Assembly (NCBI GenBank): GCA_021613535.1
Contig: CP075493.1
Location: 16,740,001-16,804,000 of the forward strand
Reading direction: 5' to 3'
Source: Adineta vaga
Lineage: Eukaryota; Animalia; Rotifera
DNA: 64,000 nt
Shown in pieces: positions 447 through 63,888 of this stretch; the first letter of the stretch is position 1; every line of letters begins with the position of its first letter. Below the pieces are notes generated by a model. It was not told where the DNA came from. It saw nothing but the letters and a program-made list of their open reading frames with translations, and searched no databases. The translations under genes and the position numbers were made by a program.

Positions 447-510
447 TGAAAGTGTGGGTGGATATGGATTATCTGTTACTTATACCTTAATCCACACTCG
501 CACCCTACAA
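447..510. repeat. Inverted telomeric-repeat element, degenerate copy
   Basis: tgaaagtgtgggtgga...ccttaatccacactcgcaccctacaa; G-rich arm, spacer, C-rich arm. Confidence 0.65.
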
Positions 511-1237
511 TTCATTTTGATTAATGAAAAAATTACTCGAGAGAGCTTTTACTTCTCGAATACGATGCTTTACATCGCTCATTTTATTAAAACCATTCAT
601 TCATTCAATCAATAAAAAATCAACTGTGCTTATGTATATTAGGGAGGTATTCATAGCTTCTGAAAGGAGCAATTTCAAAAAGCTTATATGGCTGTAAGAT
701 CTGTAGAAAATATTTGACTACACGACTGAAGACTGCAGAAGCTATAAAAGTATTTGAGACATTGAAGTGTGAAGCCCTAGTTTACTTATAGGCATATATA
801 CATTAATGTCTAGTGTATGTATGTGCCTATTGGATTTTAGTTCAACCTTTGAAACAGTGTACCCTTAACAAGAAAGAAAAGCCACGCAGTATGTACGAAT
901 TTACGCTGGTGTCATCAAAATGCCATGGTAGATGTATGAAGTCTATTAAACTGCTTCTTTTATTCAGTATGGAATAGATTAGCAGTGAGCATGTGAATGT
1001 ATGACATTTTCATCAGTTTCTTTGACGCTCCAAACACATCTTCATTTAAAGAAAAGAAAGTAATTTTGGAATTCAATCCAACATTTAAAACAACAGCGAG
1101 TAGTGATTTTTCATAAAAGATTTTAAAAGGATCCTGAAGTTTTTACATTTTGTATGAAATACTTCTCACTAACAATGTGACATATCTTTTCATGAGACTT
1201 CGCACTCACAGAAGGCACAATTTAGGCTGATTAATGA

Positions 1238-1284
1238 GAATTCAATCGAGGGTCAAGCGAGTCAGCCTCGACGAACTTTATTTA
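1238..1284 (+). repeat. 47-bp hairpin repeat; second copy inverted at 34837-34883
   Basis: gaattcaatcgagggtcaagcgagtcagcctcgacgaactttattta closely matches the reverse complement of 34837-34883. Confidence 0.75.
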
Positions 1285-1558
1285 TAATACTTGTGGATGT
1301 TATTTTATTCTCATTTACCCTGAAGATGAAAGTGAGAACACAACTAAAGAGTGCAAAATAAAGAGTTTGACAGAATTGATTGACATCTATTTATATTTAT
1401 TCATTATCAACAGGAAGAATAAATCAAATCTGAAAGTCATTTATTTAAATAGAAATAAAATTATCTGTTTTCTACTCGACAATTAAAATATAGAATACAA
1501 TTCTTTATTTTAGTTATCATTATAAAAAAAACGTCCTATCAATTCAAAGTAAATAAAA

Positions 1559-2070
1559 ATGAATGAATCAATTTCTCTTGTTAATAATTTAAATAATATT
1601 GAAAATCAAATCCAATTATATAGTTATTCATTTATGTTTATTTCTTGTCTTATTGGTAATAAATTAAATATTCTTATATTTATCATTAAATCAAAAGATA
1701 ATCCATGTACAATTTATTTATTAGCATCACAAATATATGATATACTCATATTATAATTATTTCTTAAAACAAATATAATTTATTTTATTACAAATAAAAA
1801 TGGTACTAAATCTTGGAATTTATGGTGTAAATTAAATCCATATTTTGCAAATTATCTTTCATTAAATTCAATTGGTTTACTTTGTTTAGCTGCTATTGAT
1901 CGTTGTTATGTTATATCTCGTGAAGTTTACCGACGAAATTTACTTATATTTGTAGTAGTTTCTATATTTATTGTTTAGGTTCATCGATATTTCGTGCAAA
2001 TGTCAAAAGTATGTTCAATAATGTTCGAAATTTAATTCAAGGTACAACAGTATCTATAATATCTAATTAA
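1559..2070 (+). pseudogene. Rhodopsin-like chemoreceptor GPCR pseudogene (in-frame stop, truncated)
   Basis: TM1 'LIGNKLNILIF', 'NPCTIYLLA'; after the TAA it continues 'WCKLNPY...LCLAAIDRC' (DRY-like). Confidence 0.7.
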
Positions 2071-2593
2071 ACAATAAATTCTATAGACTTTTCTTTTCAT
2101 TACTTGATTGAACAGTTTTGTACGCGAGATATTATATTGTGTGTTTTTCGTCTGAATGTCCTATTTTCTATCAGAAAAAAATCGATTGCTCATGGCAAGG
2201 CCAAAGTTTTATTTGCACATTGTCAATCGCTCGTTTTTTTTTCAATGAATTTCAGTTCTTCATGTGAATAATAAAGAGACAGACAGAGAGAGAGAGAAAA
2301 ATGAAGGACGAATAAATTTAATGATTTTATAAGAGAAGAAAAAAACCCCTATAAATATGATTATTTAGATGTTGTTCAATAGTCATCATAGTAGTTACTT
2401 TTCTTTTGATTATAAGTTGTCAAATATACTCAAAGATAATATCTTAAAGTAAGTAACACGTATAAAATACTTTCAATAAGTAAAATATGTAAAGAATAGT
2501 AAATAGAAGAAAATATTTCTTCCCCTTGATTTCATTTTGTTTCTAAAATATAATATTGAATAGTGTCTGGTTTTAGTATTCAGATATTCTACA

Positions 2594-3469
2594 ATGAGAC
2601 CATCAAATAAATACGATGTCAATGAATATCAAACTGAAATAGTTTCTGGTGCTTTCGATGTTATTCCAGAACAAGAAATTAGAGATGAACCAATAAGAAC
2701 AATAGCTTATGATCGAGAATATCACCATGAAGGTAAAGAAAGTGATCGAGAATATCAATATGAAGACAAAGAAAGTGATCGTCCGTATCAAATTCCACAA
2801 AGGTATGAACTTTATTTATTTATCAGAAGAGAAAAAATAGATTTTTTTTTTCCAAATTTAGAAAAAAATTTTCAAAATTCTTCACAAAACGATGTTTAAT
2901 TGGATTTGCCATTGGTTTAATAACTGGTATCATAATTTTAATTGCTGTTGTTGTTCCAGTTGCTGTTCTTACACGTTGTTCATTAGGTAAATAAAAATAA
3001 CTCATGAATACATATCTCAATGACATTTTTCTTTCTTTCTTTCTTTCTTTCTTTCTTTCATCAAGGTACAATCACTTCTACATCCAATTGGATCGGTAAA
3101 TTTCAAATGGATGATGCATGTGATAGAAGTGTATGCTGTTGTTTCACTAATGAAATTATTCTCTCTCAAAAAACGAGTAATCAATTACAAGTCTCAGGTA
3201 ATGTTGCTGGTATTTGTACAAATGTTCCATCAACTCTCATTTTGGCACAAACAATGCCCACCGGATTTCAAACATATATTTCATGGTATAGAGATACACT
3301 TCGTTTTCGATTAGGTCAAGATAGTTCTTATATATCAATTGTTAATATTGGACATGGAGCATGTAGTGCTAGTGGATTAAGAATATCGTATAATTCTGGT
3401 TATATGATATATATGAATGTATATTTAATTATCTTTATTTTAATAATTACAATTATCAATATGATATGA
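2594..3469 (+). CDS. Uncharacterised membrane protein, 3 exons (2594-2802, 2862-2986, 3066-3469)
   Basis: GT-AG introns join the ORF pieces; TM 'LIGFAIGLITGIIILIAVVVPVAV', Cys motif 'CDRSVCCC', hydrophobic C-terminus. Confidence 0.65.
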
Positions 3470-3645: not shown

Positions 3646-3716
3646 GGGCGTATGGTGTAATGGTAGCGCTCGAGTCTTCGGAACTCGGAATCCTGGTTCG
3701 ATTCCAGGTACGCTCA
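3646..3716 (+). tRNA. tRNA-Arg (anticodon TCG)
   Basis: Acceptor GGGCGTA/TACGCTC, D-arm GTGT-AATGGTA-GCGC, anticodon arm CGAGT-CTTCGGA-ACTCG, T-arm CCTGG-TTCGATT-CCAGG, followed by TTTT. Confidence 0.9.
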
Positions 3717-11599: not shown

Positions 11600-11745
11600 A
11601 ATTTACCAAATCGAATAAATTATCGAATTATTCGAATTAATGTTTGAGCATCACATTGATCAACTTCAACCATAAAACATTCCTTTGTTTGAGGATTAAT
11701 ACCACCAAACACCCATTGTTGAGCTCCTGGAACAAGTTCACGTTG
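11600..11745 (-). mobile_element. Merlin/IS1595-type transposase fragment
   Basis: Minus-strand translation QRELVPGAQQWVFGGINPQTKECFMVEVDQCDAQTLIRII (WVFGG...F.VEV..RDA.TL motif). Confidence 0.7.
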
Positions 11746-11803
11746 GGTGTGGGTGAGGGTTTAGCGCATAACCAAATCTGACCCACACCCACCCACCCTC
11801 AAT
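11743..11803. repeat. Inverted telomeric-repeat element at Merlin/FucP junction
   Basis: ttgggtgtgggtgagggt-ttagcgcataaccaaatctg-acccacacccacccaccctcaa. Confidence 0.9.
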
Positions 11804-12639: not shown

Positions 12640-13015
12640 ATGGCCAAACCTCGTCTTCAGATATCGAGACGTGGTGATGTTATCATGAATTACAATAATA
12701 AAGATTATGATAGACAAGGTACAGATTTAGTAGGTGTATTACCACTTAATTCAGATATTGATCCAAATACCAATATTATAAACAATAATGGATATAATAA
12801 TACAATTAAAATATCTAATCACGCGTTTAATTATGCATGTGAATATCATTTTACACCATTTCAAATCATATATCCACCAAAAACTAAAGATACCAAGCAA
12901 GGTTCAAAATTAATAAATGAATTGATTAAATCAATAAAAGAAGATTTTATGTTACGAAATCCTTCTTTTAATAAGCCTTTTCTATTTGATTTATGATGGA
13001 TTGATCCTCAAGGAG
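12640..13015 (+). mobile_element. Probable retroelement ORF1-like fragment, cut at repeat element
   Basis: 'ISNHAFNYACEYHFTPFQI..PK.KD.KQGSKLINELIKSIKEDF..NPSFNKPFLFDL*WIDPQG' resembles bdelloid non-LTR ORF1 proteins (recalled, not searched). Confidence 0.4.
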
Positions 13016-13083
13016 AGGGTGTGGGTGTGGGTGGGTGAGGTTGTGGGTAAGACTCATTTCTTTCCCTACCCCACATCCTCAAA
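13014..13083. repeat. Inverted telomeric-repeat element
   Basis: gagggtgtgggtgtgggtgggtgaggttgtgggt-aagactcatttctttccct-accccacatcctcaa. Confidence 0.85.
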
Positions 13084-16089: not shown

Positions 16090-16740
16090 TTTCCAGAGAG
16101 TTCGCCAACAAATTCTGCATAAACCAACTATTACAGTATATCAACGTGCCTCAAGATTAACTAGAATCCAAAATACTCCACATGACCATTCTTCTCCCAA
16201 TATTGTATTTAAAACAAAAACATCAAAAAATTCAAAATGAGATGGTAAACTCGTCATCCATTATACTCATGAACAACATCAGGCCTCGTATAAACAAGCC
16301 ATGCACCAACTCTGGAATGACGCATTTCGTCAGACACCAATTATTCATACATAATTGATCATTGGCTATCGCAATCATTCCAGCATAAATCAGTAACTTG
16401 TCCATTTCGATACAACCAAACGGCACGAAAATAAAACAACAAAAAAGAAACAAACTGATCGAAAACACTTCTCACAAACTTGAAAAACGTTTTTGCATGA
16501 AACTATCGAAAATTTGTTACAAAAGACCTCCTAATCTAACATTCAAATGCACTTATAAAATAATAAATAAATCAAAACAAAGTCTAATGTTTTCCATTAT
16601 AAAATCACCTGAAATTGTTTTCCCCAGACATTCCTTATCATTATTATAGTTTATCTGTGATTTTCTAATCATTTGAGTAGTCTTAGGATATAAACCACCT
16701 GATGAGTCATTTTGACAAGGACGAAATCGCGACCGTAGTA
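16090..16740 (+). mobile_element. Decayed 3' end of an Athena/Penelope-like retroelement
   Basis: 'KLVIHYTHEQHQASYKQAMHQLWNDAFRQTPII...LIIGYRN' resembles the C-terminus of bdelloid Athena-type RT ORFs (recalled); followed by a hammerhead motif. Confidence 0.55.
16694..16739 (+). ncRNA. Minimal type I hammerhead ribozyme, decayed
   Basis: accac-CTGATGA-GTC(attttgacaag)GAC-GAAA-tcgcga(palindromic stem III)-cc-gtagt; the NUH uridine appears mutated to C. Confidence 0.7.
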
Positions 16741-16746
16741 TGCTTT

Positions 16747-16765
16747 ACTCACGCGCACCCTCAAC
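16747..16765. repeat. One-armed (C-rich) copy of the telomeric element
   Basis: actcacgcgcaccctcaac. Confidence 0.5.
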
Positions 16766-17925: not shown

Positions 17926-18000
17926 ATCTTGAGGGTGTGGGTGTGGGTTAAGAGTATAGCCTAATCTATACTCACACCTACACCCATATTCTCAACATGC
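17926..18000. repeat. Inverted telomeric-repeat element flanked by an 8-bp direct repeat
   Basis: atcttgagggtgtgggtgtgggt-taagagtatagcctaatctat-actcacacctacacccatattctcaacatg; gttgatat at 17918-17925 and 18001-18008. Confidence 0.9.
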
Positions 18001-20211: not shown

Positions 20212-20425
20212 CATACAGATGGAATTCATAGATATGTAAGCACACATTTCAGTTCATGAAATATTGCAGTTTCGTTACTTTTGCAAAGCATTGAAGACGG
20301 TCTAGATGCTCGAGAATGAAATTAAACGTTTTATTCTGTGCTTGCACTCAAATATATGAAAAATTATTCGTTTTCGAAAACCTGTTCCTACATAGGATAT
20401 TTTATCATTAGTCTTATTGCAGATT

Positions 20426-21628
20426 ATGGATGCAAGTGAGTTTTTCTATGCTTGCTCAAATGGTGATGTAGCTATTGTACAATGGTTACTACCAACATTT
20501 TCGCTTGCGGAGATCGATCACCTCGAACCAAATGGAACTACGGCGTTACATGCTGCTTGTGCAAATGGACATACGGAAATTGTTCGTCTCTTGCTTGAGA
20601 AAGGAGCTGCTCGTCATTTAAAAGATGTCTTCAACTCTACTGCAAATGAAGTAGCGACAATTCCAGAAATTAAACAGCTTTTTAAGCGTCCGTTGAAAAA
20701 GGCACAATCTCGCTTTATGAGCCGTGATGTTCGTACAGAGTGGACACTTCGAAAGTGGGGTGATGCTGTTGTTCATCATTATACACTTTGTCCTATAGGT
20801 GACATGCTGACAATCGCCAATGTAGCATTCAAAATTGTCAATACTGAAGATCTCGGTGACAGTGTAGGAATGAAACGAATAACAGGGTGGATACAGCAAG
20901 TCAGAGAAAATAATGATTCGACCTATTTTTTGCGTGCCCACACGTCATCGACGGTATTTTACGAAAGGCTGAATTTGAAACTAGCACAGCATGCTGATAA
21001 TCAGCTGAATCCAGCTAATTTGCCATGGTATCTCGCATTGCCGAAGCACCTATACCATCAAAACACGCTAAGTCAGTATCGTTATCTTGGTAACACCTAT
21101 AGAGGTATGATCTTGACTCAATATGACTTCGATCAATATCAAGTGGGAGAAACCATCGTAAACAAAGCATTTCTATCAACCTCAACGTCTCGGGATGTAA
21201 CCGAATTTTTCGCATTAAGCGGTGCAGATTCTAGTCAGATAGTTACTATCTGCTTATACCGAATTAAAGACGAAAGTATTGCGCTGGATCTATCAACGCT
21301 TTCTGAATTTCCTGGCGAGCAAGAAGTGCTTATTCTCCCAGGATTCTATTTCAAAGTCACGACTATTACTGCTAAAGATCGCTACACCGAAATCGAATTA
21401 GAGCAACAACCCATCGATGATTGTACTGGACGCCGTTTGTGTGACTTATGCGGAAAAACAGGAACTATATCAGTCTCTTTCATCAACGAACAAGAAAATA
21501 TTGGTGTCGATAAAGGAGAAGCCAGAAATGAAGGTGCGATCACATACGAATGCCAGTCTAGTTTAACTGTGCGACAACATGCAAAGTTCAAAAATGATTT
21601 GAATAGAACTTACGATCCAACTTCATAG
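20426..21628 (+). CDS. Ankyrin-repeat + ADP-ribosyltransferase domain protein
   Basis: ANK 'NGTTALHAACANGHTEIVRLLLEKGA'; ART R-S-E motifs TYRG, FLSTS, EQEVL; ATG at 20426. Confidence 0.85.
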   Translation: MDASEFFYACSNGDVAIVQWLLPTFSLAEIDHLEPNGTTALHAACANGHTEIVRLLLEKGAARHLKDVFNSTANEVATIPEIKQLFKRPLKKAQSRFMSRDVRTEWTLRKWGDAVVHHYTLCPIGDMLTIANVAFKIVNTEDLGDSVGMKRITGWIQQVRENNDSTYFLRAHTSSTVFYERLNLKLAQHADNQLNPANLPWYLALPKHLYHQNTLSQYRYLGNTYRGMILTQYDFDQYQVGETIVNKAFLSTSTSRDVTEFFALSGADSSQIVTICLYRIKDESIALDLSTLSEFPGEQEVLILPGFYFKVTTITAKDRYTEIELEQQPIDDCTGRRLCDLCGKTGTISVSFINEQENIGVDKGEARNEGAITYECQSSLTVRQHAKFKNDLNRTYDPTS

Positions 21629-39003: not shown

Positions 39004-39024
39004 CACACCCTCACCCTCAAGATG
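39004..39024. repeat. One-armed copy of the telomeric element
   Basis: cacaccctcaccctcaagatg. Confidence 0.75.
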
Positions 39025-42878: not shown

Positions 42879-43204
42879 TAGCTATTTATTTTTAGTAAAT
42901 TCAATAAAAACCAATTGTAAAAATCGTAAAAGAGTTTAAATGTATGTGAATATTTATTAAAATATCCTCAACACACATCAAATTACAAATTTTTTTCTGA
43001 ATGAAACTATAATAGATATTATTTATCATGTGATGGATATATAGACCAGATAAATAATTGTAGGAAAAAACTATTTTCAATCTCTTAACAGAATAAGTCT
43101 GATAGAATCTTCTGGATTAATTTGAATCATCTCAGCTATTTTGTGAAACACGATCTGAAAGAGAGTGTTGAAGTGTTTATAGGCAGAAATTTGCACCCAT
43201 CCCT

Positions 43205-43475
43205 CCTCCACAGACCTTGACAGAGGGGTCAAAATGGCATCACCAACCGTGACAGACTGGGATCACAGACTGTGACATTTGGTTTTTAGGAGATCACAGA
43301 CCTAACAGACACAATTCACAAAAAAAATCAGAAACTGTTACAGACATGCAAAAGTGGGATCACAGACCATTACAGACTGGCAAAAAATAGAGTCACATAC
43401 CGCTACTGACTCGCATAATCCGATCACAAACGGTGACAGAATTGCCAAAATAGCATCACAGACCATAATAGATAT
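43205..43475 (+). repeat. Degenerate minisatellite, period ~30-35 bp
   Basis: Recurrent (a)tcacagacc.t.acaga(c) units. Confidence 0.65.
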
Positions 43476-43656
43476 ACGTTAGCATAAGATCACAAGTCTC
43501 AGCCGTGCTGAAGGAAAACAGGTAAGAACGCGTGCCAATAATTTGTCCCCTCGTTGCCTCCTCCCATCCCTCTCTCTCCTTGCTTATTTTTATACTAAAT
43601 TTAAAGGAGAAAACCGTTAAATTGTGTGTTGAAGACCTCGATAGACTTTATCAGAA

Positions 43657-43760
43657 ATCTTGAGGGTGAGGGTGTGGGTGTGGGTGTGGGTGTGTGGGTG
43701 GGTGTCGATGATAGTCACCTCTCCTCACCCACCCACACACACCCACACCCACCCTCAACT
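43657..43760. repeat. Longest inverted telomeric-repeat element
   Basis: atcttgagggtgagggtgtgggtgtgggtgtgggtgtgtgggtgggtg-tcgatgatagtcacctctcct-cacccacccacacacacccacacccaccctcaac. Confidence 0.95.
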
Positions 43761-45116
43761 TGACTTGGAAATTTTACAGTTTTATTCACAATTTGAACAC
43801 TAATTGAAGTATATATATTCTCTTTTCTGAAAGAAAGGGTTATACAGCCTTTAAATCATGGGCTTGAAATGCTAAAAGTTTGTCTGTTTGTTTGTCTGTC
43901 CTATCCAATCAGAATGCAGCATTCAGTAAAGCAGCAAAAACTAACCTTCGTCAATAAACAAAGCGTGACAGAAAGGTAGTCAGGATCGAGGATCTTGAAT
44001 CTGAGACTAATTTTTCGAAAAAGGTATATAGGAGTATTCTGATGCAATTTTCGAGTGTCATTTGACGAACAAGCCTAAGGAGCATCCTCAGACGTGAGGT
44101 CTGTTATCCTGATATGACCAAGGAATATACTTTAAACATTTATTGTGAAATTATGAAGTGGGAGAAAAATTTTCCTAATGTATTATTTTTTGAATTCCTA
44201 CTTTTGGTTTGGCTTCGTGCAAAAGATTTCGTTGCAGATTGCGAAGTGTTTTATTTTGACAAGAAATCTCAATGATTTAGTAGTAGAACAAATAAAAGAA
44301 AGTCATTTTGAGCAGAATTTTATCACGCATATGCAAGTAGTGGATTTATCGGAAATAAATGAAATACCGCTTTAATGTAGTTCACTATCAGAAATGTTTA
44401 TAATTGTAAATAGACATTTAGTTAATAAAGCAGTAGAAACTTGAGAAACAACTCACGAACATCGAAATAAATATATCGGATGACAAATCAACAAATTCTC
44501 AATTAATACAAATTACAACTAAGAAGACTTCAGTGATTAGTCGAAAACTAAGTGGTTGGTTTCTTACAGATATTATGAAAGAACAATCAATATGATATTG
44601 TTAACATTTGAGTGAAGAACGTTGCGTGAAAATAATTTTTAAAATAAAAAGAGTTCTTTATGAAAATAATGTTTTTGTTTTGAAATCATTTCAATATTTT
44701 TAGTAAAAAATTAGGCTGAATGAAGAAAATGAACATTTCAATATGTTTTAGCCTTGTCGCATCATTGGCTAGAAAATCAAATTTGCTTTTGAAATATGCT
44801 TTTGTTTCAGTTTACTCATTAAATTATTAGGATCTCCGTTGTTTTATCCTATACGAATCATTAGGTTTTTGAAAATAGATTGTCTAATTTATTTTCTTCT
44901 ATTACATTCATTTTCATTTTGTTCGATATTATTGACTTCGATTTTCTTTTCATCATATTGAAAACTATATGGTTATGTCAATACTTTTTTCTGTTTATTC
45001 GAGATTTTGGGATGCTTTGATATTACAACTTGTGTTTTTTTTATAGTAAAACATAATTGAATTATTTTTTTCCCATTAAGTTCTTGATTTGCTTACAGTT
45101 TGATCAATTATTTTTG

Positions 45117-45200
45117 TTGGGTGTGGGTGTGGGTGTGGGTATATCTTCTTCACTCAGGTCAACACCCACACCCAGGCCCCCCTCACACACATACCCTCAA
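45117..45200. repeat. Inverted telomeric-repeat element
   Basis: ttgggtgtgggtgtgggtgtgggt...acacccacacccaggcccccctcacacacataccctcaa. Confidence 0.9.
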
Positions 45201-45532
45201 ATTTATATTTTTTATTAATGAATTTTATTATTCAATCGTTACAGCTATCATAATGTCATTACACTGAGTATCCAGAGCTGAATGTGTAAATACTCAACAG
45301 AGTAACGAAACTATATCCCTCAGAATCTGAGAAATTTGAGTGAATTTGGTCAAATGATCTTATTACCCAATCATTTAATCATGCTCTTCAAGGGCTTTAT
45401 AATAGCATTTGATTTGGTACATTCGTTGTTCTGCTGCATGTCTCAGTATTTCATTGCTAAAAAGCTTTTTGTTAAGAACTATATTGATGAGACAATTCTA
45501 TAACGTAGCTAGTAACACCCTGGTGGCTAGAT

Positions 45533-45862
45533 TAGAGCTCGTCGGGTCCCTGAATTTTTGGTCCCGACCCGGACCCGACAGAAGAAAAAAAAACTAGACC
45601 CGGACCCGAACTTCAATTATGCTCATTTTTTACAACACATCTATCAAAATGTCGTGATCGCTCATCTAATGCATCTTTTAATTTGTAAATTACTGCTGTT
45701 GGCGACCGAGGCATTTCACGTATGTAAGAATTTTTCACAATGACTTTTATGAGAAGAAAAAGTAAAAATTAAAAAAAATTCTTAGATTTAAAAATTTGTT
45801 CGGACCCGGACCCGGACCTGTCCGGGTCGGGTCCCGGGTCCGGGTAGACCCGACGGGCTCTA
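45533..45862. mobile_element. hAT-type MITE
   Basis: TIR tagagctcgtcgggtc / gacccgacgggctcta; perfect 8-bp TSD ggctagat (45525-32, 45863-70); gacccg subterminal repeats. Confidence 0.9.
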
Positions 45863-46180
45863 GGCTAGATTTCATTCTATCAATCTATTTATAGATTGTG
45901 AGAATGTGAGTACTGAGAAGTCCCAGTCAGTAAACAAAGTTTCGTGATCTCCTCGCATATACTACTTTTGACATATTTGTGTTCAAACTTCATTATAATT
46001 CATTTGTTCTCGAAATAAATAAATTATGAAAGTGTGAGAAAAGCTAAGGAATATATAATGAAGAATAATTTACATGTTTATGTCGTTTCTGATACAGTGA
46101 ATGAATATGAGACAGGCACTATCAGTAAAACCTGTACATCATTTAATTTTCGAGTAAAAATTAATTTCATTTCCAAAGGG

Positions 46181-47627
46181 TTAAAATAGAAGAAACCATA
46201 AGAAAATAAAAATTGTCACAGAAAAATCGAACAAAGTTGTTGTTACACGAAAGGCAGACGCAGCAACAGTAGGGCCACCAGTAGGACTAACGGTAGGATT
46301 AACAGTATTAGCATCGAAACATTGAAAAAGTGACATATGAATATTTATCCCTGTCTCAGCAATTTCTCTTGCCAGATGGGTTGGTCCAAGGATATCAGCA
46401 TTTGTAAGTAGAATCACACCAATACTGTGCTTTTCATTGACTAACATCAAATGTGACATGCCTGGAAGAAAACCAGTATGACCAATGTATCGACGACCAT
46501 CACTCATAGTAGTCCAATACCAACTAAGACCATACTGTGGTGGTGGTGGTGCTCCTCCTGTAGAATCACTTGTCGAATCGTGATTGTAAGGTGGTATGAG
46601 TCCACCACCAACTATTGTTCGCATTTCAGCAATAGATCGAGGAAGAAGAATAGAAGAGCCATTGTTGATGAACATGCGAAGGTATACAGAGAGGGTTTTA
46701 GTCGACATTCGTAAGAGACCCGAAGGGTAGAAATTGAAGCTGAAGTCTGGAATATGTAGCCACGTAGGAAGATCGCCCTGCAAAAATAATATTCAAAATG
46801 AACACAACTAATCAAATTGATATTTTTACCGGAATCTGTGTGATATTCAACTGTGGTATAAAGTATTTCCATCCTTCGAGATAAGATGTATTGAATGCAT
46901 AAGCATAATGTTTGACAAGATTTTCTGTAGTTGCAAAGTCGGATAGGCGCACACCTGCTTTACTAATATCAACACCCAATGGTTTCAAAATTTTTTCTTT
47001 GACATATTCACTATAGGATATTTTCGCTACTCGTTCGACAACTAATGCAGCTAGAGCAGCACCTTCATTTGAATATGATGTGACACTGCCTGGTGGCTTT
47101 GGTAACCAGTTTGATGTGTTTGGATTCACATACTGATAAACCATATCAGCTAAAGTGTTTTGTTCATATGCAGTATCACCCGGTTGATAATAAGTATTTT
47201 GCACAGTATAGTCGACAAAGATTGAAGCTGAATGCGAAAGTAATTTTCGTAGAGTAATTGAATGAGATGGATATTGAGGATGAAAGATTCGTTTATTAGG
47301 TTCGGATAAGTATTGATTAACATCTGTATCAAGATCGACAAGTTCTTTCTCGACAAGTTGCATGACAGCAGCGGCAATAAATGTTTTCGAGAGAGAAGCA
47401 AGAGGAAAAATTGACTCGTCAATATTCATTGGTACTGGTGGTACTAAAGATTGAAAGCCAAAAGCTTCTTCATAAAGCGTATGAGTAGCATTGACTACAA
47501 TGACTGTCGCACCTGGTATGCAAGCCTTTGTGAGAGACTGTTCTATCCATTGACGATCTGGACAATTTGAACAACTAATGTTAACTATATTGACCGAAAT
47601 TGCAAGTATTACTAATAACAATCCCAT
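46181..47627 (-). CDS. Secreted, probably GPI-anchored beta-lactamase-family serine hydrolase (intron 46829-46778)
   Basis: Signal peptide, SxxK 'ASLSK', 'LLSHSAS', YxN 'YSN', 'GHTG', hydrophobic tail. Confidence 0.9.
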
Positions 47628-48602
47628 TAATATTTGTTTCTCTTAAACAAAAAATAATCTATGTTGAGGTAAGAATTCGTTGACATTAAGGACTAACTAA
47701 ATCTCGCGCACGAAAAAGTTCTTAAATAGAAGAAAAAAGAAAAATAATCTCTTTTCTTTATCATCATTTTTTCTTCACTGTTTTATATAGGTTAGGCGCT
47801 ATATCAACACTTAACTAACATCAATATTGAAAGAAAAAATGAAGCACAAATACAAAGATTGACGTAAGATGATCATATTATTTAATAAAAGTCGATAAAA
47901 AAAATAATCTTCTAACGAAATGACGTTGATGATGAAAAGTAAATGTGAATAAGAAGATAAAACGAAGCAATCAAAAAACAATGATAAAAAATAAGAAATG
48001 AGTAATAAGAAAAATGGAAGAATTTTTTTCTTTAACGCCAAAGAATACCGAGATGAAAAATTATTGTTGGTATTTAATTTATGTTAACAGAAAATTTTAC
48101 ACATATTGATACTCATACTAAATGTATTACTTTATCTTTACTTTATAACTCAATATTCACATTTTTCACTTTTCGAACAACAAAAATTGATGTTCTTTTA
48201 TCAGATCGAAAAGATATTCTCAGAAATCTCTGTCTTCTGCTGAACGTCATCATCTTTCATTTTAGAAATAAAACAAAAACTTTGAAGGAAAATGTGATAC
48301 TATATGTTAAGTTAGAAAAAAGAATCTAATCTTAGGTAAAGTATAGATGCATATCTTATAAAACTATTCTTAGTAAATATATCTTGTGATAATGACAACA
48401 TTTTTTTCTGTTTTGTTAAAAGTTACAAAAAAAAAATCTTTTTTTCTTTATTTTAACTTTTTAAAGAAATTTTCATAAAATTAACAATTAATGCCAATAT
48501 TTAATATCCATTGTCATTGAATTCAAAAAGAACAATCAAATTGATTAAGTTTATAAGAATTCTTCAATATTTCATATTGATTACGAGTATTTTCTCTATA
48601 TG

Positions 48603-48668
48603 TTGGGTGTGGGTGTGCGGGTATCAGATACCACTAGCACTCCCACCCATACCCACACCCTCAAGATA
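48603..48668. repeat. Inverted telomeric-repeat element
   Basis: ttgggtgtgggtgtgcgggt-atcagataccactagcact-cccacccatacccacaccctcaagata. Confidence 0.9.
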
Positions 48669-49050
48669 TTATGTGTTCACATATATGACGTCATATGTAC
48701 TACTAGATTTATCCGTCCTGCCATGACATCATATGACATCTTCCTATCTGTTCTTTTCGTTCTCTACAAACCTATATATATCTTTCGTTTCTTCGTTAAT
48801 AAATGTTGTTCCATACTTCACAAGATTTTCTGTTAAATAACATCCAAAGAAACAATACCTACTTCACAAGCATCTGCATTAACTAATGGTCAGGTAAGTG
48901 TTATTGGTGAACAAAATGCTACTGGTGTTTTAAATATTGCAGAATTATATCAATCATAACAAACGAATGAAAAATAAACATTTGATATTTTTTATCTTGA
49001 GAATGAGAGTATTTATTTTGAAAACAAGTTCGCATTGATTATCAATTTCT

Positions 49051-49291
49051 TTATTTTTTTGGATGAAAAAAATTATGTAAAAAGAGTCTAGCGAATTCAT
49101 ATGTAGAAGGATGTGGTGTAGAATATCCAACTATGGGTTGATGAACATGATGTGAACTATTAGATCCATATGCAGCTTCATTTGTCTGATGACTATGATG
49201 ATTATGTCCGTGTATAGAATGAATATTTTGATGATTATTTCCATTAATATGATTAAGCATTCGAGCATGAACTTCTTGTAAATGTTGCGCA
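49051..49291 (-). pseudogene. His/Asn-rich 3' gene fragment whose frame runs up to the repeat element
   Basis: Frame extends upstream of the ORF start as AQHLQEVHARMLNHING... and meets the element at ~49292. Confidence 0.4.
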
Positions 49292-49355
49292 GTTGAGGGT
49301 GGGTGTGGGTGTGGGTGTGAGTAATACTTGTCCCTTCACCCACACCCTTCAGATA
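49292..49355. repeat. Inverted telomeric-repeat element
   Basis: gttgagggtgggtgtgggtgtgggtgtgagt-aatacttgtccct-tcacccacacccttcagata. Confidence 0.9.
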
Positions 49356-49974
49356 TGCTTATATACAACAGCTAGTCCATTATCGTCTTCTTATTTAATA
49401 TAATTATAAATATTCTTTTACTCCTTTACAAAATATTGATTATTTACATACAAGCCTTTCGTTTTGTCTTTTTATTACTCTAGATGCATCATAATCAGCC
49501 AATCTTCGCTCGAAAGTAAGAATATTATACCCCACCAAATAAACACTAAACAGATCTATGTGAGAATGATCGTCCAAACTCTAATGGATGCTTCTTTAAC
49601 ATAACAATCACCTGAAATGCTTAAGTGATTTCATTCCTGTTCTGAAATTCAAATTAGATATTTTGGTGGAATTCCTTTGAAATCGTTCTAATTTCTTCTT
49701 TTGGGACATTTAAACAGTGTTTCAATCCTACCTGATGATTTAGACTCTTGAGAAAGTTCAAAACTGTAGTTGTAGCAATTTGAAACGATAATACACCCAC
49801 CCTCATCCGAATTATGTTAAGCATCATTTATTTCTTAAAAAGCAAAAAGGATTTTTTTCTCAGTGAAGTTTTTTTTTGTGATAGCATATAGTACGAATCA
49901 TCAGCGAATAGTCTTATCGTTTCGAATGTGTTCATGAAACTATCGTTCTCAAGAATAAATCGTCTGTACTTAGA

Positions 49975-50130
49975 AGTGTAAGTTAACGCCGACATTGCTG
50001 CCACCATAGTTAGCGGTAATTATATCCGGTTTGCTGTCATTATTCACATCGACGACTGCCACTGAGCGTGGACCAATGTCAGTTGCATAAGCAAATGCGG
50101 TAACGAACGTGCTGTTGGGCACTATTTGAT
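49975..50130 (-). pseudogene. Isolated FG-GAP/VCBS repeat fragment
   Basis: 'AYATDIGPRSVAVVDVNNDSKPDIITANYGGSNVGV'. Confidence 0.6.
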
Positions 50131-52712
50131 AAAAGAATTACTGTATCAGCTTAATCGATCATTAGTTGAAATAAGTAGTCCCTAAAATCCGTTTTGTTTC
50201 ATCTGTAGTGAACATCCACCTCCCATGTTTATAACCGTCACCATAATGGGGGACTGTAATCTACAAGGTTGTCTCTGATACATACACAACTCGAGTTACG
50301 GTTTAGGATTCTTTGTCGATTTCAAACTTGGCAAAAATGGGCAATTCATGGCATCGCATGGATGAGCGTGATAAAAGTAGAAATGGCTCTGAGATGGTAC
50401 GTAAGCTTTTAAAGATGTAAGATTCAAGGTGCGAAGTTGAGTTATCTTTCTGTGCTTCTTAAAGCTAGGCTCACTCTGTGAAATCGGAGGTTCGATAGTA
50501 TGCTTTGCTTCAGTGACGAGCGAAACTATGACATAGGAGAGTGTAATCACAAATTCTTTTCTGAAACATAACTGTGCATAAGTGATGGTTAAGTCGTATC
50601 CTCCTTTTGCGAAATACCATCACGCTCCGACGAAAAATGTTTTATCTTGTTTTTGGCTGTAAGATTCGTAGTCTTCGTGCGAGAATGAGCCACATGTCAT
50701 GGTAATTTCAGTGACGTTATTTCTATACCACTGTATCAAAGTCTTGTTAATCGTTAAATTAAGATCGATTCTAACAGTACTCTTATATAAATGCTCGATA
50801 TACAGGAGAAATCCTAAAATCTATCAACAGGCTTATTGACAATTTCGTCATCAATTAGAAGGATTTTTGAGTCTCTTGTAAATTGCGATCTATGAGGGCG
50901 AACACATTTTTAGCTATCTTGTGCATTAAAATAAAGCGATAAGATTCCTTAATTGATTTTAAAAATTGACTGTTTGATTAGATTGGCATTTAGAACGAAT
51001 CGAATGCTGTTTTTTCGATTACGTATTAGTACCTCATTTTTGGGCTACTAAACAACGAGCCAAAACCTAATAAAAGAACATAAACTAATGCAGTAGATAA
51101 GATGTCGGCGATAAATTATTTTTGAACTAATAGTGCTACCTCTCTCTTGCTTAGTTTGAGTGGACTATACAATAATTATCTGATGTGATGACGATACAAC
51201 AGCGAATATTAAAAAGCAATAGTAGAGTAGAGAAAAAGAAATTCATTGACAATTTGTTTCTGCGGCTACTAGTAGTTAACTCTACAATCTGCTTGTTCAT
51301 GAGTTATAAACATCATGGCAAATTAATCTCCTGCATCCTAACAAAATCTCATTTACAGATTATGCAAACCTTGCTTACTCCCATTGTAATTTTCATGCAG
51401 TACGTTCATCTGTAGTCGATATACAATATTCATGAGGTTTATTTGAGAAAACGGAACACTTGCACAGATACTTAACAAAGGATTCATCCAAAATGAATGA
51501 CAATATATTTGACTTCGGACGTTTTACATTAAATAGGTCCTAGCTGAGTATGAAAATTTTAAAAAAAGATAAATGCTCATGGTCTTTTCTATAAATTTAT
51601 ATACGCCTCACTGAAATTTCAGCTTACAGTATTCAACACACCCAAAAATTAAATGACTATACGATAAGGTTAAGTTTTATCATCAGATACTTCGACTTGG
51701 TAAAAGTTTCAATATTCCGTAAAACATAAAACAGGCTCATGCTTAGTTTAGAAGTCTGAGATTTGTGATTTTGAAGACATTCGGATTACCACTAGAAATA
51801 TACAGACACATCTAAAAGTAGTGATCGTGGCTCTTGAATACCATTTATAGTAAGCTTTAAAAGACTTTTTCTCAATACAGTCTGTCAGAGAAAAAAAATG
51901 CTCTGATTTTCTACACTATTTGATAGTACGTCAATTGATATTGAAATAGTAGAATCTGGGCACGATCTGTTGTTTGATTTTATGTAACTGTTATACTAAC
52001 ATCTATTTAATCAGTATTTTGTCAATAACTCTGGAGCAAAATAAGACGGAGAGTTTCGACTATTAAGATTAGAAAACAGAGAGGAGCATGCATGGAATTA
52101 CGTATTATATATTTTTCTAGATACTATTTACTATGTCTTCAATGATTATTTCCAGTATTAAAAAAAGATTTCTTCTGACTTCATCGACAGCATCTGTGAC
52201 TCCTGAATGACTGATAAAATATATGTAAATTTTCCAAAGTTTTATTGGTTTTATAGGAGCGATTTGAATACATACATGATCACTGAGACTTTGCTACAAA
52301 TACTTTACAGAATGAATTGGTTTTGAAAGGGGATGAATGGAATCTTCAGCAGACCATATAAATGAGTTTACAATATTCGATCGCATGCATCTTCACTTCC
52401 TTTGTCCATCGATGAGAACTGCACTATTGTATCTTATTTGTATGAAAAGTTATCAACAAAATCTTCACGCTCTACATATTAGTACCAGTATCACGCCACA
52501 AATGTTGCTAGGACCTGTACTGAATATCGATTTCTATCATCACCATACGATCTATGTGTGTGCAACAGGTAACTCAATCAAATTTTTTTCTCATATCACA
52601 TAACTTAGGTGGAAGTTCATGAAAAAATAATACACAGAATATGTTATACACACAGAAATATTTTACGCAAACATTATGGACACCGTAGTTTACACATACT
52701 ATTGTAAAATGT

Positions 52713-52725
52713 CACACCCTCAAGA
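52713..52725. repeat. One-armed copy of the telomeric element
   Basis: cacaccctcaaga. Confidence 0.45.
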
Positions 52726-53100
52726 AATTATCTTAAGATTTTCTGGAGTATTCTAACGGATTTCATAAAAACCCTATAAGTTTTCATATAAAGGTTAAAA
52801 AGAAAGTTTGGGACAAGTTTGCATAAGGAATCCGTTGAGCAATAAAAAAAATTGTTTTTGGTGAATATATCTTATAGAAATTGAGTAATAGGCTTCAACG
52901 GAGTCATTAATATGCCGGTTGAAACAATAACAGGTACCGTTTCTATTGTAATTAAAAACTACCATCACAATAGCGGCAAACGTTCAACCGCAATGAACAT
53001 CTCTGGTCTAAGTCTTACAGTGCAGAATATATATTTCAGGAAAAAATTTTGTCCATTTTTTGTTTTTGTGAAACTTATAGATAATGATATACTTGTTTAG

Positions 53101-54987: not shown

Positions 54988-56673
54988 ATGAAGAATATTC
55001 AATATTTAATTTCTTTATTAATTCAAATTAATTTAATAAAATCATATGAAATTCTTCCATTAAATGTTGGTGTTCATTTATTAGTTGATAATCAATATAT
55101 TGAAAATTCATCTTCATTAGAATTTCAAAATGGTAAAATAGAAAAAGATCTTGATCATCCATTAATTTATCCTGAATATCCATGGGAAAATGCTATTCAT
55201 TTCTATACAAGTTTTTTACAAGTTCCTGCTGATTTATCAATAAATGGCAAAGCCATGTATATGTTATATTATGCATGTGCTGCATCCTATGAAGTTTTAT
55301 TTTTTAATAATGTATCTATTTGTGTTGCTAATAGTAGTGATGGTATTCATTGGGAAAAACCATTATTAACATATTATCCTTATACAAGAAATGGAAGTGA
55401 ACCACCATGTCTTACAAATATTGTATTTATAACTGATGTAAATGAATTTTTAGGTTCTGTTTTTATTGATCGACGTTTAGGAATATCTCGTTCAGAAATC
55501 TTTAAAATGACATATGAACATACTTCTAAACGTTATATATATATTGGTACATCACCTGATGGATTTATTTGGACAGAAGGTAGAAAACCAGCTCATCCAA
55601 CAGCTGGTTTATCTGATACACAAACAGTTATGTTATATTCTCCAAATAATGGTGGTCAATATATTTTATATGGTCGATTAAATTCTGCTGTATCAAATAC
55701 AAGTATTTATTGTCCTGGTGCTTGGTCTGTCTATAGACATGTTGTTGTTACTCTATCAACTGAAAGTGCATATGGTCCATGGTCAGAATCTGTTGAAACA
55801 TTTCCACTTGGAACACCAGATCCAATTCAATGTTTTGATAATTATAATCCAGCTGCTTTATTATATCATGATGTTTATTTTCTTTTTCCTTCAGGATATC
55901 TTCATTGGGCAGAAGAACATTCTGGTGCACCAATTCCACGTGCAGCTCAAAATGATGGAGTTATGGATATTCGATTAGCGATTAGTCGTATTGCACATGG
56001 TCCTTTTAATTTTCTAACAAGAGATCCATTTATATCACGTGGAATTGGTTCAATTGATCCAAAATCGAAATTAGTTAATGGTACTGGAAGTGATCGTGAT
56101 GCTGGATTTGTTTTTTCATCATCAAATGGTTTAATGGATCCTGATTTTATTCTATCGAACATCGATACACCTTCATCATGGATGTATCATATCTATTGGG
56201 GTTCACAAACAACACATGCTGGTGGTGGAGCATATTTAAGTCGATATTGGCCAGGTGCATTTACAGGTATATTTAAAGCACGTTTACGTCGAGAAGGTTA
56301 TGTTTCTCTTTCAACATTATCATCAAATCCAACAGGTTATGGTTGGTTTATTTCTAAAGTAGTATCATTACCTGAGAAGAAGAAGAATACAAATCAACAA
56401 TTACAAATGTATATCAATGCTGATACATCAACAGCTGGTTTTTTTGCTATTCAATTTGAAGATGGTTTAACAAGAAATCCAATTGAAGGATATACATTTG
56501 ATCAATGTAAAACATTACATCAAAATGGAATTCGACAATTATTACAATGGCGTCAACAAAATGGAACTTATTCAGGAAATTTAACTCAACTTGTCAATTA
56601 TTCAAATGGTATTCGAATTCATATACATATGGCACATACAAAATTGTATTCTTTTATTTTATCATATGTTTAA
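54988..56673 (+). CDS. Secreted intronless beta-propeller glycoside hydrolase-like protein of bacterial type
   Basis: Signal peptide; 'HLLVDNQYIE', 'YPWE', Asp-box-like 'SSDGIHWEKP' and 'SPDGFIWT', 'SDTQ', 'ARLRREGYVSL', C-terminal beta-sandwich ending 'KLYSF'. Confidence 0.75.
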   Translation: MKNIQYLISLLIQINLIKSYEILPLNVGVHLLVDNQYIENSSSLEFQNGKIEKDLDHPLIYPEYPWENAIHFYTSFLQVPADLSINGKAMYMLYYACAASYEVLFFNNVSICVANSSDGIHWEKPLLTYYPYTRNGSEPPCLTNIVFITDVNEFLGSVFIDRRLGISRSEIFKMTYEHTSKRYIYIGTSPDGFIWTEGRKPAHPTAGLSDTQTVMLYSPNNGGQYILYGRLNSAVSNTSIYCPGAWSVYRHVVVTLSTESAYGPWSESVETFPLGTPDPIQCFDNYNPAALLYHDVYFLFPSGYLHWAEEHSGAPIPRAAQNDGVMDIRLAISRIAHGPFNFLTRDPFISRGIGSIDPKSKLVNGTGSDRDAGFVFSSSNGLMDPDFILSNIDTPSSWMYHIYWGSQTTHAGGGAYLSRYWPGAFTGIFKARLRREGYVSLSTLSSNPTGYGWFISKVVSLPEKKKNTNQQLQMYINADTSTAGFFAIQFEDGLTRNPIEGYTFDQCKTLHQNGIRQLLQWRQQNGTYSGNLTQLVNYSNGIRIHIHMAHTKLYSFILSYV

Positions 56674-56691: not shown

Positions 56692-56709
56692 TTTGAGTGT
56701 GGGTGTGAA
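56692..56709. repeat. One-armed (G-rich) copy of the telomeric element
   Basis: tttgagtgtgggtgtgaa, 18 bp after a stop codon. Confidence 0.5.
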
Positions 56710-57429
56710 TGAAAAAATAACGCTACTCGTATCTAAAATAGTCAAGTTTAGAAATGTTGAATAATATACTTTTAAAAACATGTTCAATGTTTATTTTAAA
56801 CACCATGTACTTGTTTATTTATATAACATCAGTTTATACCTAAAAAAGACAAATTCGAACTTTTTAATACCTGATTTGTATTTGTCGTATAAAGATTAAT
56901 AAATATTTAATCTATAGACTATTCATTTCATCATCACATCATATCTTATGATATTTCAAATATGTTTATTTCTTAATCAATTTATACAATATAATAAAGA
57001 TCTGTTGAGGACTAAACATTAAGAATGATTGTCATTTTCTCATTAATACTTTCACTTACACCCAAAAAATGGTCTTATTCAAATGATATTGAAGTAGTTT
57101 TGCTGGATAAGAGAAATATCTCTCTGATGATGATGATAATAATAATAATAATGTTCATTTATCTCATCAAGTAGAAAAATCATTTTTTCATTAAAATATT
57201 CACTTATCTCAATTAGATGAATAAAAAAAGCTTGAGATGTTATTCTTTTATTTTTAAAATTATAAAGAAATGTATCGAGACATAAAATTATAGAAGAGAA
57301 AATAAAAAGATATTATTAATATATAATTCAAAGGACAGTTCTGCACTTAATAACTTTTATAAATAATAAGTTGTTTTATAAACATTTCTCTTTCTATCTT
57401 ATCAAATAGAGTTTGAATTCAATTTTGTA

Positions 57430-61899: not shown

Positions 61900-62212
61900 T
61901 TTCTTATTTGATTATTGAAAGAAAATATGATGATGATTGTCAACGATTTTTTTTTATAGAATATCTTTTCCATGGTTACCGTTATGTTTGTTCATTCTAT
62001 CGATCAAACTATTATTTGTTTTCTTCGGCAAATATACTATTTTATCAAAGAAAGAAAATGAAATTATTTTGTGTCAATATTTATTGATTTCTCGAGTATT
62101 TTTAAGATTAATAGCACCTGCATATGGAAACCATTGTTCTCAAGGGGAAAAAAGCGATACTTCAAATACTTTAAATACTTTTTGAAGTACGAGTGAAGTA
62201 CGACTGAAGTAC

Positions 62213-62260
62213 GGTGGGTGTGGGTGTGACTATGCTCTTAATCCACACCCACACTTTCAA
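62213..62260. repeat. Inverted telomeric-repeat element, spacer in reverse orientation
   Basis: ggtgggtgtgggtgt-gactatgctctta-atccacacccacactttcaa. Confidence 0.9.
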
Positions 62261-63414
62261 ATCGATTTTATTACTATTCTTATTTTCATCAACGAAACTT
62301 ACACGATAAAATCAAAACAATGATAACGGTTTTCTATGTATATAGTGCACCAGGTAGTTTTTGTACAAGAAATAAATTCAATATGAATTTGATTTGTATA
62401 GTATCAGATATTCCAACGGATAAACTCTCAAATGTAGATATTAAAATAGTAAATTCTCTTTCTTTTTTTAATTCAGTTGAATTCTATAGTTTTCTTTGAA
62501 TAGATTCCTTCATGTCCACATATTTTGCGTCCAGAAATCGAATGTGAAAATTCTATACCAACTTTTTTGACATTTAATAGCAAATTATGTCGAGGATGCC
62601 CACGTTGTGATTTACCAATAGGCGAACAAACCAAAGAAGATGTTTAGAATTATTAATTAAAATAAAAGATTTTTTCTTTTAATCAGAAGAAAAAATAGAA
62701 TAGTTTTCTTATTTTTTCTTTAAAGTACGTCAGTAATGTATGTTTATAATAATAATACATTCTTCATGTGCTTTCGTTCGTCACAATTCATTGCCAATAT
62801 CTATGAATAGATTTAATCATTACAGGTTATAATTGCAATTTTTACGAGTAATAAATCATACATTATTTTCAGTATACCGAGTCATTAGATAACATTGAAT
62901 ATTCTGTCGAACTATTTCGTGAGGATGTGGAGTTTAGGTGAAGATAAAACAGAAAAATCTATATCTTGATTATCAGTGATAAATATTATGCAATGTGTCA
63001 TACTTCCTAAGAAGTACTTTGAATAATCTCGGTTTTTACTGTCTAAAATACTTTCGTGATGATAATACATTATGATTTATTGCAAATCGTAAATGGATTA
63101 TAAAATTTATTGCTTCTTGTAAGCTTGGAAACTTTTAACAATTAATCATTCCGTGTATGTATATATAAAGTATGCCAATTTGAGAAAAATTTCAATATTC
63201 ATACTTTTATACAACGAAACACAAGAAATGCAGTTTTTAACAATACTTTTTCTTTTGGCGGCAGGTAATTACATTATTTGAATTCTTTTATAACGAACTA
63301 TAATTAGAATTCGTTCTAATGTGAAATACATAGCCAATATTCACTTTTGTTTTATTTGCAGGTCTTTTATGTTTTCATAAATATGCCGCCGCTAATGCAA
63401 TATATCCAACATCA

Positions 63415-63648
63415 ATGGAAGTTGACTCTATTCTGAACACGTCTGAGACAACGACATTGAATCAAACAATTAATTGGACATTAAGTGATAATTATATTCA
63501 GGCAAAAGAATCAATGGTAGTTAGAAGTGAATCGAATCAATCACTTTCAGTCGGAGCAATTATTGGAATTGTGATAGGAACAATGGCCGGTTTTTGTATA
63601 TTCTGTTGTTTCTGTATGTTTTGTTTGAAAGGTTTCTGTTCAGACTGA
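63415..63648 (+). CDS. Small single-pass membrane protein with Cys-rich tail (probably the last exon)
   Basis: TM 'LSVGAIIGIVIGTMAGFCIFCCFC'; upstream ttgcag acceptor at 63361. Confidence 0.55.
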   Translation: MEVDSILNTSETTTLNQTINWTLSDNYIQAKESMVVRSESNQSLSVGAIIGIVIGTMAGFCIFCCFCMFCLKGFCSD

Positions 63649-63827
63649 TTACCATTAATAAGTAAACCCCAAATATAAGAATTGAAATGCATCATTCTGA
63701 TGCGAAAGATCAAACAGAGATATAGTTGGCATTAGTCATATAATTTGGATCAAGTCGATTAGTAGAGAGTACATAAGCATCTAGATTGCTTGATGATATT
63801 GAATTTTAATCAATGATGGTGATGTAC

Positions 63828-63888
63828 CATCTTGAGGGTGTGGGTTAAGAGCAAAGCCACAATCTCATCCACCCACACCCTTGATATG
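63828..63888. repeat. Inverted telomeric-repeat element, consensus-like copy
   Basis: catcttgagggtgtgggt-taagagcaaagccacaatctcat-ccacccacacccttgatatg. Confidence 0.9.

Follow-up and report, generated by a model that had tools for sequence, protein, structure and literature searches.

In mammals, the interstitial repeats that telomerase makes at chromosome breaks show microhomology with the broken end and contain nucleotides adjacent to the telomerase template (Nergadze et al. 2007, PMC2246262). In Adineta vaga, a rotifer of the bdelloid group, de novo telomeric repeats have been reported at deletion breakpoints (PMC13564844), and the telomeres of bdelloids carry Athena and Terminon, which are endonuclease-deficient Penelope-like retroelements (PMC6431247, PMC3846280). 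Here we describe short telomeric elements in a subtelomeric stretch of A. vaga DNA of 64,000 nucleotides (contig 1:16,740,001-16,804,000; hereafter the window), which lies about 1.3 Mb from the right end of the 18.15-Mb contig. A typical element consists of a G-rich telomeric arm (G-arm), a spacer and a C-rich arm (C-arm), and an earlier note on this stretch had interpreted such copies as candidate scars of break repair. We consider it somewhat favoured, at a probability of roughly 0.55, that the elements are seams at which free DNA ends were capped and then joined.

The insertions described by Nergadze et al. in primates, in rodents and at the TERC-interstitial telomeric sequence (TERC-ITS) loci resemble the A. 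vaga elements in several respects (PMC2246262). In both cases short telomeric tracts are fixed at internal sites, microhomology exists between the broken 3' end and the insert (at four of four junctions here), and the break sites are unaltered in some cases and in others bear a deletion, an insertion or a target-site duplication (TSD). A few nucleotides from beside the template precede the first repeat in the mammalian insertions; here a fixed graded leader, possibly of like origin, precedes the first repeat. Unlike the mammalian single tracts, the elements described here are paired head-to-head and most of them are two-armed; they are also far denser, possess a leader of 12 nt and recurrent spacers, and in many cases connect unrelated DNA.

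Neotelomeres in human cancers, and the inward (TTAGGG)n-(CCCTAA)n fusions seen there, share with our elements the order of G-strand and then C-strand, and they arise by healing of a break followed by fusion (PMC11293586). The cancer fusions are somatic and have long arrays with no fixed leader or conserved spacer, whereas the elements in A. vaga are fixed in the germline, carry 2-8 repeats in each arm and exist in hundreds of copies or more. Inward fusions are also recognised by spacers that are unrelated between events, and many of the spacers found here were not of this kind.

Athena and Terminon show further points of likeness to the elements described here: they attach to free ends, occur in subtelomeres, hold captured host genes between their units and possess a C-rich (ACACCC)n/(TCACCC)n 3' end that base-pairs with G-rich ends. 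Their known arrays, however, run head-to-tail, not head-to-head (PMC6431247, PMC3846280). Unlike these retroelements, the two-armed elements have neither a hammerhead nor a retroelement body, and the only hammerhead in the window is located at 16699-16765. Finally, miniature inverted-repeat transposable elements (MITEs) and foldback transposons are likewise short, inverted-repeat elements with many copies, but in our elements neither the termini nor the TSD are fixed, and precise empty sites are lacking. Features that appear to be new are the head-to-head pairing, the graded leader of 12 nt, the recurrence of spacers, the density of the elements and their coincidence with the boundaries of fragments, although the primary papers on Athena and Terminon may hold an earlier description.

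Structure and distribution of the elements

The chromosome-level, haploid A. vaga assembly comprises 100.8 Mb in six contigs. TGTGGG is the published telomere repeat of the species (PMC8494291, PMC7943196), as the earlier note had stated for bdelloid rotifers, and it also makes up the array that terminates contig 4 on the left, where the first unit is of the TGAG type and adjoins unique DNA. In the window, 15 matches to GGGTGTGGGTGTGGG were found when at most one mismatch was allowed, compared with none in 100 shuffles. A moderately strict definition yielded 14 G-arms and 16 C-arms. Within 80 bp of each other these arms formed nine G-to-C pairs and no C-to-G pair, where 0.35 pairs would be expected under random arm placement. 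About 17 two-armed and 5 one-armed copies had been listed previously; all 22 coordinates showed the structure described, some of them in decayed form, and the spacing is approximately one element per 3-4 kb.

When the whole genome was scanned as previously proposed, the strict two-armed pattern GAGGGTGTGGG-N10-60-CCCACACCCTC was found at 93 sites, while the reversed control (C-then-G) gave none, and the claim that the G-arm always comes first was thus upheld in the window as well as genome-wide. Since the strict pattern matches 0 of the 17 two-armed copies in the window, the true number in the genome must be much above 93. A 16-mer terminus, CCACACCCTCAAGATG, occurs at 288 sites (control, 0). 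The hits were concentrated in subtelomeres: by both patterns, compared with the centre of contig 1, the density of elements was about ten times higher in its terminal 1.6 Mb and 4.7 Mb. A. vaga subtelomeres are known to be rich in transposons and in genes of foreign origin (PMC8494291). Nor are the elements an artefact of assembly, because the independent DNA contigs of 2013 match the flank, arm and spacer junction at 45117 without a mismatch, and RNA contigs from other loci contain whole elements.

The consensus can be written as [flank]-(CC)ATCTT-GAGGG-(TGTGGG)n-spacer-(CCCACA)n-CCCTC-AAGAT(GG)-[flank]. The outer motif (CATCTT)GAGGG given in the earlier note is present, but the true motif is longer, being a conserved leader of 12 nt, (CC)ATCTTGAGGG, which reads CCCTCAAGAT(GG) on the C-arm. 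In 47 unselected arms the share of the consensus base, counted outward from GAGGG, was T 87, T 64, C 36, T 51, A 47 and C 28%, with 17% at the next position, and the lengths of contiguous leader matches peaked at 1-2 nt and at 5 nt. On the C-arm side the same outward decay was seen, mirrored, after CCCTCA. Start points that vary along a single template would produce graded ends of this sort. The two arms of a copy are unequal in repeat number and type and are not mirror images; between paralogs of 96% identity, the arms differ by whole repeat units. Comparison of the arms and counts of the leader register therefore agree with the unequal arms and ragged outer ends reported before. The elements have the potential to fold into hairpins (z -3 to -6.6). 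Among 30 termini picked by the 16-mer alone, about a quarter to a third were one-armed, and one-armed copies have unique sequence, not a shared retroelement, on the inner side of the arm, except at 16747 and 52713.

Two other loci on contig 1 have an unusual structure. At 165 kb, an interstitial telomeric array of more than 130 bp ends in the full leader CCCTCAAGATG beside unique DNA, and looks like an internalised former chromosome end. At 188787-188855, the flanks of an element are inverted repeats, with GTTTTAAGAAAACGCTGCC on both sides, 41 and 6 nt from the ends; this may be a seam inside another small inverted-repeat element or a fold-back duplication.

Junctions at the outer edges of the elements

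Positions 38595-48667 of the window form a 10-kb inverted intrachromosomal duplicate of contig 1:16199809-16212446, 0.54 Mb away, with an identity of about 96%, and this pair provides a useful internal clock for insertions. The two paralogs differ structurally at five places. Two of the differences are ordinary transposon insertions that are not in the paralog: a mariner of about 1.2 kb (41688-42875) with 44-bp inverted ends and a TA duplication, which has about 30 genome copies at 75-93% identity, and a 334-bp MITE (45530-45862) with the ends TAGAGCTCGTCGGGTC.../...GACCCGACGGGCTCTA. The remaining three lie at the outer edges of elements, which we designate by their start positions.

At the first of these, the two-armed E43657 (43657-43762), which is not in the paralog, and the adjacent 1.36-kb fragment Y (43763-45116) stand in place of an unrelated stretch of 5.8 kb. 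Homology stops on the left at GAAATC|TTGAGGG, with a leader overlap of 3 nt, and on the right at the very start of the G-arm of the two-armed E45117 (45117-45200; spacer TATATCTTCTTCAC), so that the spacer and C-arm of the latter are common to the paralog and its left flank differs up to the arm. The second difference is a 173-bp indel that abuts the G-arm of E48603 (48603-48668), a two-armed element present in both paralogs, and the third is the end of the duplication itself, which coincides exactly with the outer end of the C-arm of E48603. As read from these sequences, the simplest history would involve one ancestral seam, A-E45117-B, with later and independent re-opening of its G-arm in each of the two copies. 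Two more structures are common to both paralogs. The two-armed E41110 (41110-41177) differs by one TGTGGG unit in its G-arm. A G-arm at 38846-38857 is followed, 150 bp away, by a C-arm with leader at 39004-39025; the latter had been listed as a one-armed copy, and the two may instead be one long element (38846-39025). A genome search found no source locus, long terminal repeat or terminal inverted repeat for fragment Y or the paralog's 5.8-kb stretch, and Pfam was uninformative. Positions 43816-44021 correspond to a dispersed repeat of about 200 bp, with 40 or more copies at 70-90% identity on all contigs.

Fragment F (630 bp, 48665-49294) lies exactly between E48603 and the two-armed E49292 (49292-49355). 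A 91% copy of it at chromosome 3:382689-383290 is situated inside other, transcribed DNA and has no arms at either boundary, whereas in the window fragment F is bordered on the left by a C-arm and on the right by a G-arm. For a fragment copied from elsewhere, this arrangement points to 3'-end extensions at both of its ends. An apparent RNA splice joint at 48665 turned out to be the chromosome 3 paralog and not a splice.

The flank and the leader overlapped by 2-3 nt at each of the four junctions that could be reconstructed, namely GAAATC|TTGAGGG, GTTTTGTT|GAGGG, GCGCAGTT|GAGGG (the left junction of E49292, 2 nt) and CCCTCAA|GATATT. Homology stops at the outer edges of E43657, E45117, E48603 and E49292, and unrelated flanks are joined at three elements, E43657 and E48603/E49292. 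Some copies were inherited by segmental duplication. We also looked for allelic or orthologous contigs by means of the neighbouring acyltransferase protein; identity above 90% was found on the reference chromosome only, and the A. ricciae and Rotaria loci of its relatives are not syntenic with the window. Short-read DNA contigs end at the arms.

Target-site duplications

The comparison of a locus with its homeologous copy, which the earlier note had suggested, placed the junctions in the 96% paralog at element edges, but at least two copies elsewhere are simple insertions with TSDs of 8-9 bp. Among 54 elements, direct repeats between the flanks were no commoner than in mismatched controls, and the absence of a consistent TSD was therefore confirmed overall; an exception is the two-armed copy at 17926-17999 (spacer TTAAGAGTATAGCC), which is exactly flanked by the 8-bp TSD GTTGATAT. 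A one-armed copy at contig 5:3382561 has a 9-bp TSD, AATATTCAG, and ends exactly at the spacer core discussed below. A possible third case, of 8 bp, was seen at another contig 1 locus. The TSDs at 17926 and contig 5:3382561 indicate that the targets there were contiguous. Taken together, the graded ends, mixed flanks, microhomology and few TSDs fit the sealing of breaks with variable end processing and do not fit a transposase.

Spacers and the search for a template

Spacers were compared for exact shared 10-mers or longer, with paralogs left out. It was found that 20 of the 45 spacers (44%) shared such a sequence with an unrelated copy, compared with 2.6% in shuffles, and about half of the spacers had no detectable relative. 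The arms do enclose a spacer, as described previously, but the spacers are not arbitrary, and part of each element is thus a copy of something shared. The families include TTAAGAGTATAGCC, ACATCTATCTAATA and GAGGTAGAAAGCAATAAAGATAC, and the spacer of the two-armed element at 62213-62260 is the reverse complement of the TTAAGAGCATAG family. The commonest core, GAAGAAGATATAC, stands beside a G-arm at 42 genome sites, against one in the control. TGTAGA TGTGAG usually stands ahead of this core and the C-arm follows it directly; its boundaries against both arms are constant. A few copies, including the one with the 9-bp TSD, stop just past this core and run into unique DNA.

The tail of Terminon/Athena elements, from the hammerhead to the C-rich 3' end, was considered as a source of the spacers and was not supported. 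Hammerhead-linked 3' ends, which stop at CACCCTCA, number 19 genome-wide, compared with 288 leader termini; the commonest core was never near a hammerhead, and four reference Terminon tails aligned to the spacers no better than shuffles did. One spacer family resembles some of the 19 hammerhead tails, by eye only. In addition, we searched the genome for a telomerase RNA gene, that is, for the core, template and leader without a G-arm or for shared downstream sequence, and no such locus was found.

Elements in other bdelloids

The same leader and architecture were seen in A. ricciae, where one locus carries a leader-bearing arm, CATCTTGAGGG-TGAGAG, and two Rotaria loci of similar size contained no leader-bearing arms. 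A scan of metagenomes with the 17-mer CATCTTGAGGGTGTGGG gave 108 hits, of which 19 rotifer-like contigs with low GC content, many from three related sets, were used; most of the other 89 hits were high-GC and represent chance matches. Several of the low-GC contigs hold two-armed elements with the same kind of spacer, and one element is joined to a hammerhead-bearing 3' end.

Possible origin of the elements

If the elements are seams between capped ends, their formation could be pictured in three steps. A free 3' end would first anneal through 1-3 nt to an RNA reading ...(CCCACA)CCCUCAAGAUGG and be extended into (CC)ATCTT-GAGGG-(TGTGGG)n, a pattern that is seen in the sequence, by an enzyme that we infer. 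Annealing of different 3' ends at 1-3 nt to one RNA would give a fixed leader with ragged starts. The RNA may be that of telomerase or the C-rich 3' tail of an Athena/Terminon retroelement, and the evidence does not separate telomerase from an Athena/Terminon-type reverse transcriptase as the capping enzyme. The template RNA would contain CCCACACCCUCAAGAUGG, and a 5' end at GUAUAUCUUCUUCAC would make the commonest spacer a run-off product.

In the second step, a capped end would be joined to another capped end, giving a two-armed G-to-C element, or to a bare end, giving a one-armed element. As two G-rich overhangs cannot pair with each other, we propose that one of them invades an existing element (or a small RNA) by telomeric homology and copies its spacer and opposite arm, and that the copied C-rich 3' end then anneals to the other G-rich overhang. 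Bridging of this kind would account for the spacer families, the free arm lengths and the newly made outer leaders. The third step is seen in the comparisons above: the seams join the ends of the same break, as in the cases with 8-9 bp TSDs, or unrelated fragments, and their outer edges are re-used for later insertions, deletions and duplication borders. The proposal of break-repair scars is thus partly supported, namely as regards seams at DNA ends, by the graded leader, the microhomology at all four junctions and the unrelated flanks; the shared spacers and the duplication show that they are not wholly independent events.

Several points weigh against capping and joining. The junction evidence consists of four junctions, one duplicated segment and one captured fragment in a haploid assembly. 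No source RNA gene was found, and the copies of the core all occur with a G-arm or unique flanks and share nothing beyond the leader. Several spacer families are hard to square with a single telomerase RNA, and the copying of an existing element is pure inference. Moreover, recurrent spacers, hairpin potential and a few TSDs would also be expected of a small mobile element.

A non-autonomous element of this kind, a hairpin RNA (or DNA) of about 50-100 nt with a specific loop, might be copied into breaks or nicks by a reverse transcriptase acting in trans, either of the Athena/Penelope type or telomerase. One-armed elements would then be truncated copies, and the mosaic of flanks would result from later recombination between copies. 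We regard this as the strongest competitor, though a doubtful one, with perhaps one chance in a few. Spacer families common to unrelated loci, the strong hairpin potential (z -5 to -6.6), the TSDs at 17926 and chromosome 5:3382561, the whole elements in RNA contigs and the retention of the family in other bdelloids all speak for it. However, the same graded leader is found at both outer ends, unlike the pair of one primed and one randomly truncated end that such copying would leave, and the arms of one copy are not mirror images. Homology breaks at the outer edges and not inside the elements, where recombination between copies would fall; most intact copies have no TSD, and no conserved promoter or master copy was found.

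It is also conceivable that two ends were each extended by telomerase and then fused by plain end joining, with an untemplated spacer, every element being an independent event. The exclusive G-to-C polarity, the unequal arms with their ragged leader and the half of the spacers without a relative would all follow from this. Nevertheless, it seems improbable in view of the shared 10-mers in 44% of the spacers and of the core GAAGAAGATATAC with its constant boundaries to both arms, and there is no obvious way for two G-rich 3' overhangs to anneal.

We find it very hard to sustain the alternative that the earlier note itself had offered, a cut-and-paste MITE or foldback DNA transposon with telomere-mimicking terminal inverted repeats. 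The inverted-repeat architecture, the high copy number and the 8-9 bp TSDs (two cases and a possible third) would suit it, but the termini are graded and not fixed, homology stops at element edges, all reconstructable junctions show microhomology, three elements have unrelated flanks, and about 30% of termini belong to one-armed copies whose inner flank is unique. TSDs are not enriched and one of the TSD cases is one-armed; the real insertions in the paralog comparison, the mariner and the 334-bp MITE, have a quite different appearance. Across the window and about 290 kb of other loci, no autonomous partner carrying these termini was encountered, no genome-wide transposase search having been made. 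Short spliceosomal introns or introners running from GTGAGG/GTGTGG to CCCTCAAG can practically be dismissed: in length the elements match the introns of rotifers, both strands offer GT...AG pairs, and GT is enriched after AAGATG (better explained by a leader extending to ...ATGGT), but whole elements are retained in RNA contigs, the sole verified intron (46777-46828) is AT-rich and unrelated to them, and removing elements restored no long reading frame in an ORF (open reading frame)-bridging test that was itself uninformative.

Bdelloids survive massive DNA breakage, and no other animal is known to carry as many foreign genes; most of these lie in subtelomeres. Capping and joining, if correct, would turn the elements into hundreds to thousands of dated repair or capture events, which could be counted and compared between lineages. 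The fixed leader would offer a sequence handle on the rotifer telomerase RNA, or on capping by an Athena-type reverse transcriptase. The re-use of edges suggests that the seams are fragile or preferred sites that keep subtelomeres in flux. More tentatively, and in our view with the odds against it, subtelomeres might be built by serial capture, in which linear pieces, own or foreign, are capped at both 3' ends by a telomerase-type reverse transcriptase starting from a fixed leader and are then joined, in head-to-head fashion, to a chromosome end or within a break. Palindromic seams would then be a fossil record of each capture and mark an integration route for horizontally acquired genes. On this reading, CCCUCAAGAUGG and the run-off core together would also reveal the sequence of the rotifer telomerase RNA around the template.

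Other elements and genes in the window

The remaining elements of the window include several degenerate copies. Of the two-armed ones, the first (447-510) is degenerate, the second (11743-11802) has the left end TTGGG and only a weak Pfam match to a hAT dimerisation domain nearby, and a third is located at 13014-13083. A Penelope-like 3' end of the Athena/Terminon type occupies 16699-16765 on the plus strand; it has a short tail between the hammerhead core CTGATGAG...CGAAA and a one-armed C-arm (listed at 16747) ending in CACCCTCAAC, and in a scan of the whole window the hammerhead was under the Rfam gathering score. Farther on, two-armed elements are found at 28942-29002 (degenerate, with the leader CATCTTGAGGG intact), 31678-31730, 33273-33328 (leader ACCATCTTGAGGG), 34767-34814 (short and degenerate) and 63828-63888 (full leader ACCATCTTGAGGG). 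One-armed C-arms lie at 49793-49806 and, on the plus strand, at 52713-52727. The latter is at the end of a repeated non-coding block of 3.4 kb (49347-52725), which contains 106-bp tandem repeats (about 49985-50091) and may be a retroelement 3' region; in its two copies, one at contig 3:17.646-17.653 Mb and the other at contig 5:1.232-1.238 Mb, the repeat units are much more numerous. A one-armed G-arm (56692-56710) starts 19 bp past the end of the ORF 54988-56673.

Two elements lie close to stop codons. The degenerate two-armed element at 21629-21683 begins directly after the stop codon of a plus-strand ORF (20417-21628) that encodes ankyrin repeats and an NAD:arginine ADP-ribosyltransferase domain. 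The two-armed element at 26333-26386 is situated between convergent genes, 40 bp past one stop codon and 7 bp past the other. The stop codon 7 bp from its C-arm belongs to I4U23_005317, a two-exon acyltransferase-3/SGNH (OafA-like) gene on the minus strand (26393-28567), whose product has rotifer paralogs and bacterial relatives.

The gene content of the window is typical of a subtelomere, with beta-lactamase-family genes, the bacterial-type acyltransferase-3/SGNH gene, the ankyrin/ADP-ribosyltransferase ORF, the mariner and the Penelope-like 3' end. The sole Rfam match at the gathering score was a tRNA gene at 3646-3716 on the plus strand. One beta-lactamase-family gene (46111-47595, minus strand) is transcribed and spliced, and a second member is located at 24985-26293. 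The 52-nt AT-rich intron of the former, at 46777-46828, was removed in two independent RNA data sets.

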